Shown: positions 11,811-64,000 of the stretch, in pieces | How the letters are laid out: each line of letters starts with the position of its first letter | Numbering within the stretch: position 1 is the first letter of the stretch | NCBI GenBank assembly: GCA_904063045.1 | Contig: CAJFCJ010000006.1 | Location: 744,001-808,000 of the forward strand | Length of the DNA stretch: 64,000 bases | From: Dimorphilus gyrociliatus | Lineage: Eukaryota > Animalia > Annelida | Direction of reading: 5' to 3' | Notes under the pieces: generated by a model | Seen by the model: only the letters and a program-made list of their open reading frames with translations | Told to the model about the DNA's origin: nothing | Database searches by the model: none | Program-made: the position numbers and the translations under genes

Positions 11811-14800
11811 TTAAAAGTCGTCAGATTCAATGTCAATGTCAAAAATTTCTCCTTCCGTTTCGTCTTCACTATCAGAGTCAATGGTATATTTTGTAACTCT
11901 GGCTCTTGTTGACTTCGCTCTTGGTTGTATATCCGAGGAGTCTAAGTCTTCTTTTTCCTATTAAAAAAACATTGAAACTTTATAATCAATAACCTCATTG
12001 AGTTATTAAATTTTACTTCATTATCGGAAAGCAAGACAATTTCAGACTCAGAATCAGACATTTCCCAAGCTTTTTTCTTTGGTTTCTTGGGAGATTTTTC
12101 CTATAAAAATTTTTATAAGTTTTAACTCTCATTTAATGATTATATTCTTTTTACCTTCTTCGGTTTTCCCTTCTTCTTTGGCTCATCCAGGAAGGTACTT
12201 GGTTCAGCAGGAGTTTTCCTTTTCTTCTTTGGTTCGGCTTTTGGTTTTGATTGCTCGGCAGAAGTTCTCGCTACAATATATGTTTTTATAAATACAGCTT
12301 CATGAATTTATTAACTTACGAGAAACAACTTGTTCCAAGGGAGGCATAGAGTCATCAGAGTCAACGTTTCCCAGAAAATCATCTATTTTACGCTGCTTTC
12401 CATCCTCTTTTTTCTATTGTCAAAGCTTATTTTAGAGATATATCATTTATTAAAAGAAAATATTACTGCTGCAGCTTTTCGTTTACGATTTGCCTCAGCT
12501 AAAACCTTCGTTCTAAGAGCAGGATCAAGAACAGGTGGTACTCTCTCTCCAAATTGTGATGGCTTGGTATCTTGAAGATGCACCTTGGCTGTCTTTCCTC
12601 TCCCTGTTTATAATATAAGGATAGCTTATTGTTTATGATATTTAATAAAATTTATAGCAAAACATTAACCCTTTCCAGTCTTTCCTGTAGTTGTCACGAT
12701 TGCAGTTCCAGCATCTGCTCTCTCCTTTTCTTCTACTTTCTGGTAAATTGTACAAAAGATAAGCTATCTATAAAGTATTTAATTTAATAAAACCTCTAAT
12801 TCTTCAATAAAATCATTTAAGTCTTCTCGCCATAAATCTTTAGGGGATTTTTTCTTCAAAGTATTTAATTCGACTTCCTTATCTTTCTTTTTCTTCAGGA
12901 ACTCCTCTTTCTTTTCGCGAGATAGGTTGTAGATAGGCATTCCAAGTAAATATTGGAAATCGTAATCGCCTGCATCTTCCGTTTCCTCTTCTTTATCCTG
13001 ATCTTCAATAGAATCAGCTTTTTCTCTCTCTCTCCGTTCCTTTTCTACTTTCTCCTTCCAAGATTTCACCGGATCAGGCTCAAAGTCACGTTGAACCAAT
13101 TGGGCAATAATATCTTTCTTTTTCCTATCTTCAATTTTGATTTTGCCCTCGATTTTCTCTACAATAAATCGAGCCATATTAGTTAATTTTCTCATCTCAG
13201 CCTCCAGCATATTCTCCATATATGACTTTCTATCCCCATAGAGTTTGAGACGATAACCATAAAATTCTTTTAAAATTTCTATTGGATTATTATATCTCCT
13301 TATACATCCATTTGTGTCAAATAAAACCATGGATGCTAATGACATAGTTGTTTGGATCTTAAAATATTTATGAAGCCCCATTTGTCGCGCATCGGACATT
13401 TTTGCTTCTGACATTTTGACTACAAATTTTACGGTTGTATCAGTATGATATTCTCTGAAGTCTTGTATAACAGAGGGAGTTTTTTCAGTACCCTGCAACA
13501 TAGGATGTAAAACGGTTTCTTTATACGGTTGAGTCCACGTTTTAACTGGTAATTCAGTAATTTCAATTTCATGTTCATTCAGCAGAGACACTTCACCGTT
13601 GGAAGCATATTTAGTTTCGTCTACAGCGATAATTTCGCCTCTGAAGTTTTTATACCAGGGCTCCATATGGCGTGGTTCCAATCCATCCATCATTAACTTT
13701 AAGTTTTCAACAATATCTCTCGGATTGTAGTTAGGAACTTTTGTACTCCATCCAGTCCCTATGCCTTCAGCACCATTGACCAATACCATAGGTAAAATAG
13801 GAACATAATGATTAGGTTCAATTCGCTGATTATCATCATACAAGTGTAAAAGTAAGGGATCGTCATCTTCGTGAAACAGCTTTCTTGCAAGGGGACTTAG
13901 CTGAGTAAAAATATAACGAGGAGAAGCAGCATCTTTCCCTCCATTCAATCGTGTACCAAATTGTCCAACAGGAACCAAAATATTGATATTGTTTGAGCCA
14001 ACGAAATTCTGAGCTAAATTTATGATCGTTGCCATAAGAGATCCTTCACCATGATGATAGGCAGACAATTCGGCCACGGCACCAGAAAGTTGGGCAACTT
14101 TAACTTCCTTTGTTTGCTTTCTTTTAAAGCAGGCAAATAGTACTTTACGTTGACCTGGCTTTAAACCATCACAAACAGACGGTATTGAACGTTCATTATC
14201 GGCATTTGAAAACAGAATTAACTCCTTGTTAACAAAATCAGAATAAGTAACAGTTTTCGTATCTTTCCCATATAAATAAACCTAAAAGTTACTAAAATTA
14301 AGTTTAAAAGCTCAATTTATTTCTTTGTAATACCTCAGGTCTATCCGTTAAGTGTCTCTCTTTTCTATCATTCATGTATTCAGTAAGCCAGGTCTTTCTT
14401 TCTTCAATTTTCTTTTTGCTAAAAGCTAGAAGTATAGAATCCTCATCCGTACTTCCTCCAAACCTAAATTTAATTCGGTGCCGTTGCATATCCATGAAGT
14501 ACTCCTTAGCTTCTTTTGAAGTGGACGTACCCAAACCTTTGTAGTACTTTACTTTCCAAACATGCCAATTTGGAGTTGCCTTTTTCCATTCTTCAAATTC
14601 TGGTATGCTGTAAAAACTGTGGACTTTGTCTTTTTTTGAAACTTTAACGATCGGAGTAATAAACTCTTCAATAAAATTATATTTTAACAAGTTTGGCCAC
14701 TTATTGTGAATAAAATTTATAATTAAGCCTTTTATATGAGAGCCATCTTGATCCTGATCAGTCATTATCATAATTTTTCCATATCTTAACTTTTTAATAG

Positions 14801-57757: not shown

Positions 57758-59730
57758 TTAAAACAGCCCACAATCTTTCAAGTTATTTTTAATGATCACA
57801 TCCGTAACTGCATCAAATACGAACTGTACGTTATTTGTATCCGTGGCGCATGTAAAATGAGTATAAATATCCTTATATCCTTTTTTCTTATTCAAAAGTT
57901 CAAACTGCATTTGAATATACTCAGACGCTTCTTCAAAATTATCACCACCTGTGAATAAATTTATTATAGAATCTTTGCAAAGAAGTAAAATAAATGAACT
58001 TACCTGTATATTCCGGAAAACAATTTCTAAGGGATGATTTGGTTATTTTATCCATAAATAAATCCTTTTTGTTTAGAAAGAGAATAATCGAAGTGTCAGT
58101 AAACCATTTATTGTTGCAAATAGAGTCGAACAGCTTCATACTCTCCATCATTCGGTTCTTTGAAAGAATTTAAACAAACATTAAAATAGTGAACTTTTTA
58201 AAAAAATTAAAAATATTTACCATCTCTTGGTCTTCTGCTAGAGTTAGATCGTATTCACTCATAGCAACAATAAATATTATCGCCGTAACTCCTTCAAAGC
58301 AGTGTATCCATTTCTTTCTTTCGGATCTTTGGCCACCAACATCAAACATTCTGGAAAAGTTTTAAAAGATAATACTTTAGATCAGTAAAAGTTGGATATA
58401 ATTAAAATATATTTACTTAAAATGTAAATCTTTATGAGTGAAATGCGTTTCAACGATACCCGTAGTTTTCACCCTAGTTCGCAAAACATCTTGCTGAGTT
58501 GGTATGTAGCTTGGATCGCTAATTCGCTCTAGAGAATCCAAGTAGCTGTCGAATGAGAAACATTCGTGATTAATGAAAGAAAGTTATTACAAAGAAAATA
58601 AAGCAATTATTTATGGTTTACAATCTTTTGGATAATTCTACAAAATAGTTTAAATTATCGATTTTACAACACTTCATAATAAATCTTTAATACGTACTAT
58701 TCAGCAGAATCGTTAAGTTGATATTCTCTTGATCTGCGGAAGCATGCTTTGATTCCTGGATCATTCCACACCGACTGCATAACTAACGCCAATTCTCGAG
58801 ACATTTCGCCATCTTCTTTTCCAGCGATTGTGAAAAAACGCCTTGCATCCTCCTAGTTATGATAAAAAGCGGTTTTATAAAAAACTATATTGGATTAAAA
58901 ACTCTAATGTTACCTCTTTATCGCGACCGGCGAAGGAAATTTTAAGTTGTCCCATAGCTCGTATAATAGCAGCCAAACTCTGAATGGTATTTGAATAAAC
59001 TACGGGTTTGTATCTTTCACATTCTTCTTTTGAGTAGCCTCTATCATGAATAATTCTGCAGGAAAAAAAAACAATTATTTTCGGCCTAATTAATAATATT
59101 CCAATTCAAATACCGCATCTGTTTAACGATTGTACTCTTTCCGGACTCTCCCGCTCCTGTAAGAATAAATTGATTTTAGTTTAACAATTAGAAAAATATC
59201 AAGTTTTATTTTCTTTATCTTATCATTTTAGCTTGTCTACAATAACGATTTTCCTATAAAAAAAGAAGCTGTCAATTTGATTGAAACCAAACGTGTTGTT
59301 AGCAAGTAAATTTTCGATTCATGATCAATATCCCTTAAAATCCCAATAGACTGTTTTAACTACCCATTGTGATGACGTCAACGTATTATTTTTACCGTTA
59401 AGATTAGATATAGATAACATATGCTCCTAAGAGGCCTACTATGACAAATAATTTTTAATGCGCTGTATAAAAATATTGCTAATGAAGTATTGGTAATTGT
59501 GACCAATTTTGCGGACTTTTGTAAAAAAAAACAAATAGAATAAAAAATCGTAATTTACTTAATTGTTTATACAAAATACCTTCGCCTACCTACTTGTCAC
59601 AACAAGCCTTACCTAGAAGTAGCAGTTTTACTTCTCTTCCTGCTTTTTCTCCATCTGCTTTTAACTGTCTATCTAAAGCCCTCGACCTCTCAACAGCCGC
59701 TTTGTCTTCGCTGCTAATGGCGCAGCCCAT
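57758..59730 (-). CDS. GNAI: Heterotrimeric G protein alpha-i subunit, multi-exon
   Basis: [16 protein letters not shown] (myristoylation/palmitoylation site); GAGESGKST; [12 protein letters not shown]; [19 protein letters not shown]; LFLNKKD; TCATDT; C-terminus [10 protein letters not shown] is Gi-type (Go ends GCGLY). Confidence 0.96.
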
Positions 59731-60220
59731 TTTTAATAAAATATTGTCAATTAAAGTAAGGTAAAGATCCGGTTTCTAAGCACGGCGTCTGCTGAAAAGA
59801 AGCGCCAACGACCTAATTAGTTTATAAAGTTAAAAAGATAGATATAATAGTAAAACTTACCAAAATCTACCGATTCGCAATTGACACCAATTGAGTAAGA
59901 TTATTAATAAACAAAAAATTCGTGCAAAAGTCTGTCTATCTGATATATAATCGCCGTCAAGGCTTGCACAAATTCAAATATTAAATATTTTACCCGGATG
60001 TGTTAAATAGCGCTGAGGCGAATGAGAGAGAGTTTGGGAAAATGGCTGCTATTCACCACCTAAAGGAGCCATATTTGAATATGTTAACTGCCATAACCGC
60101 TTTTTAAACCGTTTGAAAGCGCCATCTATTGGTAAAATAGTGTCAAGGACAATTAATAGGAAAAGTTTTTTGTATCTTTAATATTCCAATTAATGGTAAA
60201 CTGATCGTACAGTAAAAAAA

Positions 60221-61651
60221 ATGTTTTCTCAAAGGTTAGCTTTGAATCGGATTCATCAATTGTCAAAATTTGCCAGCATTATTCCAGAGCATGTTTTCTC
60301 TGCGAGAACTATGGCGGTTGTATCGTACTTTTGTCTTGAATAATTTAATGCTATTAAAAAACCAATACGCAGATACAAAAGAAAACTTGTTTATACGATT
60401 TTCATGTTCAAAACGACGGCAAAATGGTTAATTTCGCTGGATTTTCCATGCCAGTTCAATACAAGGGCTTAAGCATCACTGATTCCCATTTGCACACTAG
60501 GCGAAATGCATCCATTTTCGATGTTTCTCACATGCTTCAAACAAAAATACTTGGCAATGATAGAGAAGAATTTTTTGAAAAACTAACAGTATCTGACGTC
60601 AAAAATTTAGCAGAGGGACAGGGAACATTATCCTTGTTTACAAATGAAAAGGGGGGCATTGAAGATGATCTTATTGTTACTAAAGCAGCGGAAGGTTATC
60701 TTTATGTTGTGTCAAATGCGGGCTGCCTCGAAAAGGATTTGGAATATATGCAAAAAGCAGCTAAAAATTTTAGAGATCAAGGAAAAGACGTTCAAGTAGA
60801 AGTCGTCAAAAATGGATTATTAGCTTTGCAAGGTCCAAAAATGAAGGATGTTCTACAACCTTTAATAGATTGTCAATTATCGGAATTGACATTCATGAGA
60901 TCCGTTCTGACAAGGGTAGCCGGTATCGATTGTCGAGTTACTAGATGTGGGTACACAGGAGAGGATGGAGTTGAAGTAAAAATTTCAAATTGATACTACG
61001 AGATTTAATTAAGAAATTTAGTATGATTTCAAATATAGAAAAACTTATTATTATTCTTATATAGATATCCGTTGCTGAGAATCAAGCAGCGATTCTTGCC
61101 GAAAAACTACTCGATAATCCTCTTACCCGGTTGGCCGGATTAGGAGCAAGGGATACTTTACGATTAGAGGCGGGATTGTGCTTATATGGAAATGATATGA
61201 ATGGTGAAACCACTCCAGTTGAAGCCGTTCTTGCTTGGACCATTCCGAAACGAAGAAGACTTGATGGAAAGTTTCCTGGAGCTTCAATAATTAACAGACA
61301 ATTAAAAGAGGGAGCCACTAAAAAGCGAGTTGGATTCTTATCAAAAGGTCCCCCTGTCAGAGGTAAAGTGGACAGCTGGCTTATAAATTTTTTATATCGG
61401 ATTCAAAAGTTTCTCTCTTTATTATAGAAGGAACTGTTATACTTAATGAAGAAGGTACAGAGGAGATAGGAAAAATAACAAGTGGATGTCCATCTCCGTC
61501 ATTGAAACAAAACGTGTCTATGGGTTATATCATGAAAAATCATTCTAAGATTGGTTCCAAAGTGAGATTTTTAGTGAGAAAGAAGTTTGTCGATGGAGCA
61601 ATTGTGAAAATGCCCTTTGTACCTATGGGTTATTATCACGGAGAAAAGTAG
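60221..61651 (+). CDS. AMT: Aminomethyltransferase (glycine cleavage T protein), mitochondrial, 4 exons
   Basis: Transit-like [14 protein letters not shown]; KTCLYDFH...[15 protein letters not shown]; FDVSHM; LALQGP; [13 protein letters not shown]; [18 protein letters not shown]; TSGCPSP. Stop TAG 61649-61651. Confidence 0.96.
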
Positions 61652-61778
61652 TTTAGGAAGCGAAATCTTTCATATTTTAATATTTGACAAGAAATTTAAA
61701 TATCAAATTGTGAATTATGTATCATAAGGTCAATTTCGTTTATATTTTCATTAATATTTCAAAATAGCTGCAGTATAT

Positions 61779-64000
61779 TCATACGCGCTTATGTTCAGAA
61801 AATGGGTCGTGCTCTGACTCATAATCCAAATGAACAAAGGCTCTCTCTACCTCCGGCAAATATTCAATCTTGTGCTGTGGATAATAACATGACTACTATG
61901 AATTCTAGCTTTTAATTGAATATCAAACCTGCAGTGATTCTCCTATGTCATGTGATTCTTTAAGTGTCATATCCTCAGGTAAAACGATATCGACCTCAGC
62001 AATAAAATTCGAACCAAAATGATACACTCGTACAGTGTCTATTAACTGGAAAAATTCATTTGTCAATCTTATAAAAGAACAATTTTCAGATGAAGAAACA
62101 TAGAATTTAAAGATATAGAATATGTTTAAAAGTCAAATAACATAGCATCTTGATTTTTACTTGTAGCAATCCTTTTAGAAGATTCTACATGGACAACATT
62201 AGTTTTTCGAAATCTAAGCATATTTCTGATACTATCCCTTAACTCTTTGCGAAATATTAGAAAAACGGCTATATTAAACCATGAATTTGAATACGATATT
62301 ATGTAGATGGTATTTTCAGTAATGCGAAATGAGTTGGAGATTGGTCCACAAAAAGATACATACAATCTAACTATTTGAACAGGTAAATTACATAAAATAA
62401 ACAGAATTATCAGGACTATAAGCATTTTCATGGACTTTTGTGTATCATCGTCTCGCGAACCATTTTCTTTTAATCTACGGGATAGTGTTTTCAAAACTCT
62501 ACTGTAGCAATAAGCAATAATTGTGAGTGGAATTACAAACAGCACAAAAAAATCTAGTATCACAAAGGAACGATTAAATTTCATAAAGTTTGGGTCGAAG
62601 GTGCAGGCATGTCTTGAGATTCCATCAGAGCTTGTTACCACGATTAAATCAAAAGTTAATGGAATTTTGATTGAATATATTGTAGCAAATAGCCATATGA
62701 GGGAAATGAATAATGCTGACTTTTTCAATGACATCATTTGACTTCCTTTTTCCAAAGCTATGACATTGTATTTTACGATCGCAATACTTGCAATTGATAG
62801 CACGCTTGCAACCGAACTTGAAGACGACATATAGTGACACAGCTTACAGAGTATACTTCCCAGGTATTGTTCTGAAAACATTCCTGTTATCCGAGCAGGC
62901 ACGACCAGCAAGCCTAAAGATGCTCTTGCCGTCAACAAAGATAACAGAAACAAGTTGCTTACTTGTCTCCTCAGACGCGGATCCTTTGAAATAGAAACTG
63001 CGATGACAATATTTCCAGCAACGATCAAAACTATACATGAACTGTACAAAGTTATAAAAGTATATCGGAAAGTTTCGACTGTCTCAGCTTCAGGTCTTGG
63101 CGAATCGTTTTCATTCATAGTAGTTTCACTTTGTTCTCTAAATTCGGTGGTTACTTGATTTAAAAGCATATTCTGCTCTAAAAGTTTCTCCAGTTGAAGA
63201 AAAACAGCTCAATGAGTACGATGAACGCAAACTGATCGTCAGCAAACACTAATTACAAATCGATGACTTACACATAAAAAAGCATTCCTACATGTTTAAT
63301 GGATCTAGATCTATAATAAATGCGTGTAACAAAGAGACACTATCGAATGCTACAGCCGATATCATGAAAAAAAACTTACTAAAATTGACGGATCGTGATT
63401 TAGGGCTATCCAAGTAATTTTTTTCATTATATCAGGTCGGGCAGTGTGGCCAGTCAGCATTTTAATTTGCTCTGAAAGCATTGATAAACAATTACAAAAA
63501 GATTATGTTTAAAATTATATACCATTGCCAGTAATCGACCAACTGACGATAATGTAAAAGCTGATAAGTATGGCACCAATTGGATCCGTATACGACCACC
63601 ATTTGTAACCTATATAACCGCAAATAAGAGCAACAGAGTTTGAAAGCGTGTCATTTCGATGATCTTCAGCTAATGCTTGGGTTGTAGGAACAGGTACTCG
63701 ACGGCAAGTTAAAAATAAAATCAGTTTGATAATAATTGTCAAAACTAAAATTATAATTGTTGCTATATCGATATTTAAGGTAGATGAATCCTTGGTTGCG
63801 TAATTAATAATTTTTTCTATGGATTCTCTAATCATTTGAACAGATGCTAAAGCCATTACAACTGATAAAATGACAATAGCAATAGGTTCTAGTTTTGTTC
63901 TTCCTCCAGGATAAGAATATATATCTCTTTTTTTCATAACTCTCGAGCTCCACCACATGAGGGCACCACTTGCTAGATCAACAGCTGAGTCTATTGCTGA
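61779..64000 (-). CDS. Cation diffusion facilitator of the Mn-CDF (plant MTP8-11-like) group; 5' part outside the window
   Basis: TM2 DSAVD and TM5 DHRND (DxxxD motifs); [17 protein letters not shown]; [14 protein letters not shown]. After a 1334-nt intron (63379-62046) come [39 protein letters not shown] and [31 protein letters not shown] (TGA 61779-61781). Confidence 0.92.
62126..63169 (-). CDS. Intronless orphan class A (rhodopsin-like) GPCR, 347 aa, nested in the CDF intron
   Basis: Seven hydrophobic segments; GN in TM1; Cys at the top of TM3 and in ECL2; W4.50; P5.50...CY in TM5; helix-8-like [13 protein letters not shown]. Confidence 0.85.

Follow-up and report, generated by a model that had tools for sequence, protein, structure and literature searches.

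In the cholinergic locus, VAChT is encoded within the first intron of ChAT, on the same strand; the two share a 5' exon and a promoter, and their products belong to one pathway. Over a tenth of the genes of mouse and human are involved in intron nesting, with an orientation slightly biased to the opposite strand (Montibus et al. 2024, PMC11694760). Nested genes are considered to accumulate by neutral processes, according to the statement in PMC3488318 that cites Assis et al. 2008. Poly(A) interference by nested genes and L1 elements has been documented in human (PMC3192792). Truncation of the host is to be expected when a guest gene on the sense strand has a strong poly(A) signal of its own. 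The annelid Dimorphilus gyrociliatus has a median intron of 66 bp, and its genome paper reported the lack of trans-splicing and operons and the presence of 944 ATAC (assay for transposase-accessible chromatin) peaks in unusually long introns (PMC7854359). Here, we analyzed a window of 64,000 nucleotides from this species (contig CAJFCJ010000006.1, positions 744,001 to 808,000), at the end of which a gene for a G protein-coupled receptor (GPCR) lies inside an intron of a gene for a metal transporter of the CDF (cation diffusion facilitator) family. All positions below are those of the window.

We propose, with a probability of about 0.6, that the locus contains an independent and functional gene for a class A, peptide-receptor-like GPCR, nested on the same strand in a CDF intron near the 3' end of the host, and that this gene combines an intronic promoter of its own with an exit through the host's last exons, in a 1.3-kb intron that is specific to the lineage.

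A receptor gene within a spliced host intron

The minus strand at the end of the window carries the CDF gene, of which the 3' part could be read, from 64000 to 61779. RNA was represented by the assembled contigs (k=31 graph) of one public run containing this DNA. The kind of run is not on record; since its contigs are spliced, they were taken as RNA. They matched the window DNA at 99-100%. Between 59500 and 64000, seven joints with GT..AG or CT..AC ends were found in these contigs; six of them skipped 51-89 nt, and one skipped 1334 nt. The latter connects 63380 to 62045 in a spliced contig, with CT..AC on the plus strand, that is, GT..AG on the minus strand. On the donor side, ...AAT CAC GAT CCG TCA ATT TTA is followed by GTAAGT, from 63379, and on the acceptor side, TTTTTCCAG is followed by TTA ATA GAC ACT GTA, with the exon starting at 62045; both sides are in phase 0. 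This host junction was accepted because of its splice-site ends and exact frame and because exons B and C are contiguous coding sequence in five homologues. The host splices out the whole 1334-nt intron.

The intron is about 20-fold longer than the genome's median intron. An initial annotation, made from the letters of this DNA, had put most introns at ~60 nt, which agrees with the six other RNA-supported introns in 59500-64000 (51-89 nt) and with the published median of 66 bp (PMC7854359). The entire coding sequence of the GPCR lies inside this one intron, so that it is a nested gene; its open reading frame (ORF) is on the host strand and fills 78% of the intron, leaving 210 nt on its 5' side and 80 nt on its 3' side. 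The initial annotation had described a same-strand GPCR nested in an exceptionally long CDF intron. Its coordinates, the 1334-nt intron, the 347-aa ORF, the 78% fill and the flanks of ~210 and ~80 nt were all correct, and the junction 63380/62045, whose absence from RNA it had named as fatal, was present in an RNA contig.

An RNA of the nested gene that enters a host exon

From the 5' leader and the ORF, the contig covering the nested gene continued through the 80-nt spacer and, without splicing at the host acceptor, into the first 30 nt of exon C. The transcribed region of the nested gene thus extends beyond the intron, since the contig, from 63231 to 62016, reaches a host exon. Contigs 3 and 4 both ended on 62016-62045, where contig 2 began. 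Depth bins, which were the exactly summed contributions of the listed contigs, left no assembled RNA for either 63232-63379 or the last intron (61875-61928). The lack of coverage over 63232-63379, together with the contig start at 63231, indicates that retention of the host intron does not account for the GPCR RNA, whose 5' end is its own and lies about 150 nt into the intron. Likewise, because the last intron has zero RNA, molecules that enter exon C must either terminate within it or be spliced as the host RNA is. No joint in the RNA contigs linked upstream host exons to the GPCR region.

The intron sequence upstream of the leader holds three ATGs, and the leader itself (63231-63170) holds none; therefore, the GPCR start codon is the first AUG of the nested RNA. 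No foreign letters that could represent a spliced leader were found at the 5' end of contig 3. Its first base directly follows CAG, with CTGAC only about 7 nt from the AG and no pyrimidine tract. We regard this CAG as a coincidence, because of the lack of foreign letters at the 5' end and because the species is reported to have neither spliced leaders nor operons.

We suggest the following mechanism. The ~150 nt after the host donor would act as an intronic promoter, the GPCR RNA starting at about 63231. Since the nested RNA has no donor, it reads straight over the host acceptor into exon C. The GPCR mRNA would then remove the 54-nt last host intron and end at the host poly(A) site, with the host's last two coding exons serving as its 3' untranslated region (UTR). 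The absence of an intronic poly(A) signal of its own would spare the host from premature termination. The GPCR gene itself may have entered, or come along with, an intron born in the dinophilid lineage. In the most economical reading, which is likely, the GPCR mRNA takes its 3' UTR from the last two exons of the host and ends at the host poly(A) site. The initial annotation had already suggested an internal promoter with the host's last exons borrowed as 3' UTR; the contig running from 63231 to 62016 into exon C fits this idea, in which the 3' end itself is inferred. The features of the locus are listed in Table 1.

Table 1. Features of the nested locus (positions in the window)
Feature	Position	Strand	Evidence and remarks
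GPCR coding sequence, intronless, 347 aa	62126..63169	-	Intact ORF; 7tm_1 E=1e-35; homologue in the relative 66% identical
GPCR 5' UTR, at least 62 nt	63170..63231	-	Sequence and contig start; no upstream ATG
First 148 nt of host intron, no RNA contig; presumed promoter of nested gene	63232..63379	-	Zero by depth bins; promoter role inferred
Nested-gene RNA contig, 1216 nt	62016..63231	-	Record 3; 0 differences, no joint, no loose end
Spacer, 80 nt: start of GPCR 3' UTR; by position also host branch point, polypyrimidine tract and acceptor	62046..62125	-	Hexamer scan
Proposed 5' UTR intron	63178..63271	-	GTAAGT at 63271 and TTTTAG ending at 63178 exist; unused in RNA contigs
CDF long exon	63523..64000	-	Cut by window end; phase-1 donor; Pfam Cation_efflux E=5.6e-22; RNA contig record 4 spans 63523-64000
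Short host intron, 51 nt	63472..63522	-	RNA joint 63471/63523, CT..AC on plus strand
CDF exon B, ends ...NHDPSIL	63380..63471	-	Translation and RNA contig; conserved in all homologues examined
Host intron, 1334 nt, GTAAGT...TTTTTCCAG	62046..63379	-	RNA joint 62045/63380
CDF exon C, ends ...GESLQ	61929..62045	-	ZT_dimer E=2.4e-5; entered spliced from exon B, unspliced from GPCR RNA
Last host intron, 54 nt	61875..61928	-	RNA joint 61874/61929; zero intron coverage by depth arithmetic; absent in 6/6 non-dinophilid homologues
Last CDF coding exon	61779..61874	-	Stop TGA 61781-61779; RNA contig 2; first ATTAAA beyond at 61681

The nesting is conserved in a diverged relative

The best homologue of the GPCR (P0001, 66% identical) was found on DNA contigs L001 and L002, from two runs of another organism, referred to here as the relative. 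There, a CDF exon ending in NHDPSVL|GTAGGT is followed by a 1274-nt intron containing the GPCR ORF, then by TTTTCAG, a CDF exon and a 50-nt last intron. Synonymous divergence (dS) between the window and the relative was ~1 or more in all coding regions. The ratio of nonsynonymous to synonymous divergence (dN/dS) was 0.10-0.21 for the GPCR and 0-0.09 for the CDF exons, and the long exon had 89% amino acid identity. The same nesting at a dS of ~1 or more, combined with a low dN/dS, indicates that the nesting is old and that both genes are under purifying selection. The noncoding parts of the intron upstream and downstream of the GPCR aligned between the two no better than shuffled sequences and contained no conserved promoter motif; the first 148 nt of the host intron could not be aligned to the relative.

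Alternative readings of the nested transcript

Several points weigh against the mechanism proposed above. Contigs show no true transcript ends, strand or isoform proportions, and one side of the host joint is 30 letters long, the contig halting at a k=31 branch node, which is just below the 31-letter bridging rule. No 3' end of the GPCR RNA was seen, contig 2 being merged with the transcript of a convergent aminomethyltransferase (AMT) gene. An ATTAAA inside the GPCR coding sequence (62474) and the variant hexamers AGTAAA (62161) and AATGAA (62060) could act as signals. An intron about 200 nt after the GPCR stop, within the 3' UTR, could make the mRNA a target of nonsense-mediated decay. At the other end, the contig starts right after a CAG, which leaves a small chance of an unseen splice or trans-splice, and promoter motifs are not conserved with the relative.

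The alternative that survives best keeps the promoter of the GPCR gene and gives it a 3' end of its own, by cleavage at a noncanonical signal near the stop codon or in exon C, with the RNA crossing the acceptor as a minor read-through product. A scan for hexamers found neither AATAAA nor ATTAAA from the GPCR stop to the host acceptor, in the window and in the relative (L001) alike, which upholds the earlier remark that no AATAAA precedes the acceptor. In the relative, the spacer from the GPCR to the acceptor is 74 nt, and the first canonical signals occur only past the CDF stop; in the window, no ATTAAA outside an intron occurs until about 100 nt beyond the CDF stop. Candidate variant signals do exist, namely AGTAAA (inside the GPCR coding sequence), AATGAA (14 nt before the acceptor) and AATAGA (62043), and contigs, which give one mean depth, are blind to where most molecules end. 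On the other hand, the canonical signal is lacking in both species, and no loose A-tail end was reported on contig 3. Moreover, k-mers over 62046/62045 were abundant enough to assemble, whereas the host pre-mRNA was not (zero over 63232-63379). We therefore consider a separate 3' end for the GPCR rather unlikely, and favor its exit through the host exons.

The GPCR RNA could also be a by-product of the host, such as a retained intron, an intron fragment or a splicing intermediate, from which the GPCR is translated or which is not translated into it at all. It has the host's strand and is continuous with the downstream host exon, and long introns are retained more often in this species (PMC7854359). 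Such an origin is nevertheless very improbable, since the first 148 nt of the intron are without an RNA contig and without a link to exon B, the GPCR ORF is under purifying selection across dS>1, and the leader from 63231 is free of upstream AUGs, unlike the remaining intron. The initial annotation had offered, as another option, that the two products are mutually exclusive outcomes of one pre-mRNA; this option is not supported by the RNA contigs, which show no upstream continuity.

In a locus of the ChAT/VAChT kind, the GPCR mRNA would come from the host promoter, spliced from an upstream host exon, or via 63271->63178, to an acceptor before the GPCR. The position of 63231 after a CAG preceded by CTGAC would suit this, and GTAAGT (63271) and TTTTAG (63178) are present. 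Based on these two motifs, a 5' UTR intron had been suggested for the GPCR. However, no RNA joint corresponds to it: the contig begins only downstream of the donor and shows no splicing across 63231-63178. No joint or loose letters occur at 63231, CTGAC is only ~7 nt from the AG, where a pyrimidine tract is absent, and the species is reported to lack spliced leaders (PMC7854359). We give little credence to a host promoter for the GPCR.

Finally, an assembly chimera, against which the initial annotation had cautioned, is ruled out by the same gene order in independent DNA contigs from two runs of another species, and a dead, decaying inserted copy is hardly conceivable, as the RNA contigs match at 99-100% and the ORF is intact in both species with a dN/dS of 0.1-0.2. 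Nothing was found in favor of either reading.

Age and origin of the host intron

The CDF exons were mapped singly onto six homologous loci (L006-L011), among which errant and basal annelids were not represented. Exons B, C and D form one uninterrupted coding stretch in Helobdella robusta, Capitella teleta, Lamellibrachia satsuma, Lottia gigantea and the metagenomic locus L008. Another metagenomic locus, L007, has a 124-nt phase-0 intron (13214-13337) two codons upstream of the site of the host intron (NHHPK|VLLIDT), with no gene inside; it may have arisen by intron sliding or been gained independently. A tree built from the exon A region grouped the window CDF with the annelid copies, so that the loci are orthologues or co-orthologues, and with the mollusc as outgroup, parsimony favors a single dinophilid gain over repeated losses. 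Judging from these sequence comparisons, the host intron is probably specific to the dinophilid lineage. The question raised earlier, whether related annelids and molluscs have the GPCR in their CDF introns, thus has a divided answer: the relative keeps the nesting, whereas Capitella, Lamellibrachia, Helobdella and Lottia have no intron there.

The dinophilid CDF gene has also lost 2-4 introns that split the long-exon region in other lophotrochozoans, and it has gained, in all, two 3' introns (the host intron, B|C, and C|D) that are absent in Capitella, Lamellibrachia, Helobdella, Lottia and L008.

One possible origin is that insertion of the GPCR gene into an uninterrupted terminal CDF coding exon created the host intron, the insert being tolerated since it was spliced out as a new intron. 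We consider this idea doubtful. If it is true, and if the introns around other intronless genes nested on the same strand in this genome are likewise lineage-specific, introns would be born here by way of gene insertion, and inserts would avoid truncating their hosts by sharing the host's 3' end. No CDF exon was found near GPCR homologues at L003-L005 (within 10 kb on either side where available) or at seven metagenome loci (L012-L018). Within 61900-63450, there were no terminal repeats at the intron ends and no target-site duplication. Marks of a retrogene were also looked for: there was no A-run after the GPCR stop and no flanking direct repeat, and the gene itself is intronless.

Three other candidates were rejected. 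An origin of the intron from a transposon or a duplication was not borne out, as comparison of the flanks with the whole window gave only chance matches of 11-13 nt and no repeat family. The 210 nt upstream of the GPCR, examined as a decayed copy of exons C and D (212 nt), had no DNA similarity above that of shuffled sequences, and the only trace at the protein level was a 4-residue HDIG match that is absent in the relative. An inverted repeat of 25 nt and 80% identity over the GPCR start and stop codons (63150-63174 / 62117-62141) was attributed to chance, being reached by 1/60 shuffles and not present in the relative.

The receptor and its family

The 7tm_1 score of the GPCR was 124 bits, against a Pfam cut-off of 30.5, and profile positions 1-256 of 260 were covered. 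The nearest solved structures were those of the peptide receptors NPY2R and GALR1 (profile matches at E=1e-36) and NPFFR. The exact protein of the window had no record in the contig index. The GPCR is a member of a small family from several invertebrate-like sources, in which the canonical D2.50, E/DRY, CWxP and NPxxY microswitches were not found (alignment A1). Instead, the family has R at 2.50 (AR for AD), xKY for DRY, C-x-x-P without the W and N-[ILV]-x-V-F for NPxxY. These odd motifs are invariant or nearly so in 11/11 aligned members, from several organisms. Since they are shared by all 11 members, they are a hallmark of the family and not a sign of decay of the nested copy.

Homologues elsewhere with 40-45% identity are intronless too, like the dinophilid copy. 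Some more distant members, on metagenome contigs L014-L018, are split by introns. The non-dinophilid members bear long acidic N termini with EPE repeats.

The host transporter

The CDF gene was searched exon by exon, and no spliced model was used in any search, fold or tree. According to Pfam, the long exon encodes the Cation_efflux transmembrane (TM) domain and exon C the cytoplasmic ZT_dimer domain; FieF structures matched at E=3e-5. The signature of the Mn-CDF group, as Montanini and coworkers are said to have defined it in 2007, is DxxxD in TM2 and TM5 in place of HxxxD. The translation of the long exon contains two such motifs, DSAVD and DHRND, in agreement with this signature, and the CDF homologues carry names of the type metal tolerance protein 4/7/9/10/11-like. 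The label of Mn-CDF transporter given to the host in the initial annotation fits these motifs and the homologue names of the 9/10/11-like type. It is reasonable to place the transporter in the Mn-CDF group, with Mn as a predicted substrate.

Neighboring genes and transcripts

In agreement with the published genome (PMC7854359), the GC content of the window is ~33%, its genes lie very close together and their transcript ends overlap, and its best hits are annelid. The other long ORFs of the window were exons of ordinary genes (topoisomerase II-type DNA_topoisoIV, beta-adaptin and APH kinase), and no further nested genes were found among them.

An RNA contig over 61206-62045 has both a plus-strand intron at 61361-61425, which belongs to AMT, and the minus-strand CDF intron at 61875-61928. 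Since one contig contains both introns, the convergent AMT and CDF genes (stops at 61651 and 61779) have overlapping 3' UTRs. Another contig, 59612-60975, joins the 5' region of a G-alpha gene (minus-strand intron 59789-59860) to the 5' exons of AMT (plus-strand intron 60316-60371), and these head-to-head transcripts meet or overlap within 59861-60221. The G-alpha gene, of the i/o type (57942-59730), is on the GPCR strand, 2.4 kb downstream. In the relative, CDF is likewise followed by an AMT gene on the other strand and then by a G-alpha gene (L001, 5527-5920). The neighborhood of GPCR, AMT and G-alpha, which the relative retains, is probably due to chance in a genome this compact.

Comparison with known nested genes

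The locus is a well-documented case of a known layout, that of nested genes, and is ordinary in kind; taken alone, it is one more nested gene and no surprise to specialists. The premise of the initial annotation that nested genes are usually antisense is weak, as those of mouse and human are only slightly biased to the opposite orientation (PMC11694760), so that pairs on the same strand are nearly as frequent there; nesting on the same strand is common in other animals. Nested genes have mostly been catalogued from annotation alone, and the RNA available here permits a mechanistic reading. Exit through the last exons of the host would account for the way in which a guest on the sense strand leaves its host transcript untruncated. 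Because the four named lophotrochozoan homologues lack the host intron, the locus is a dated, concrete case for asking whether guests colonize introns or create them. In a genome with a median intron of 66 bp, nested loci may explain much of the tail of long introns and some of the "intronic" open-chromatin peaks reported for the species.

Like other animal intron-nested genes, the GPCR is a whole coding gene in one long intron of an unrelated host with no evident functional link, and its nesting, once gained in one lineage, has been maintained. It differs from them in that its transcript overruns the host acceptor into host exons and in that the host intron is ~20-fold longer than the median, 78% filled and apparently lineage-specific. 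No spliced leader, such as that carried by a downstream cistron in operons with trans-splicing, was found at the 5' end of the GPCR contig.

The locus resembles ChAT/VAChT in that a membrane-protein gene without introns is nested in the orientation of its host and that overlapping transcription units with common exons encode two unrelated proteins. In contrast to ChAT/VAChT, no 5' sharing was seen here, as the contig begins with neither a joint nor a loose end; sharing would instead concern the 3' exons, and the GPCR and the CDF transporter are not known to be functionally linked. Alternative intronic promoters that extend an internal exon upstream are similar in having an intronic start, an unused downstream acceptor, and downstream splicing and a 3' end in common with the host. 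The difference is that the extension here bears a complete, unrelated ORF with its own stop, and the host coding exons would become untranslated. What sets this locus apart is the picture at the RNA level (its own start, no terminator of its own and reading into host exons), together with the 20-fold contrast in intron size and the apparent youth of the intron.

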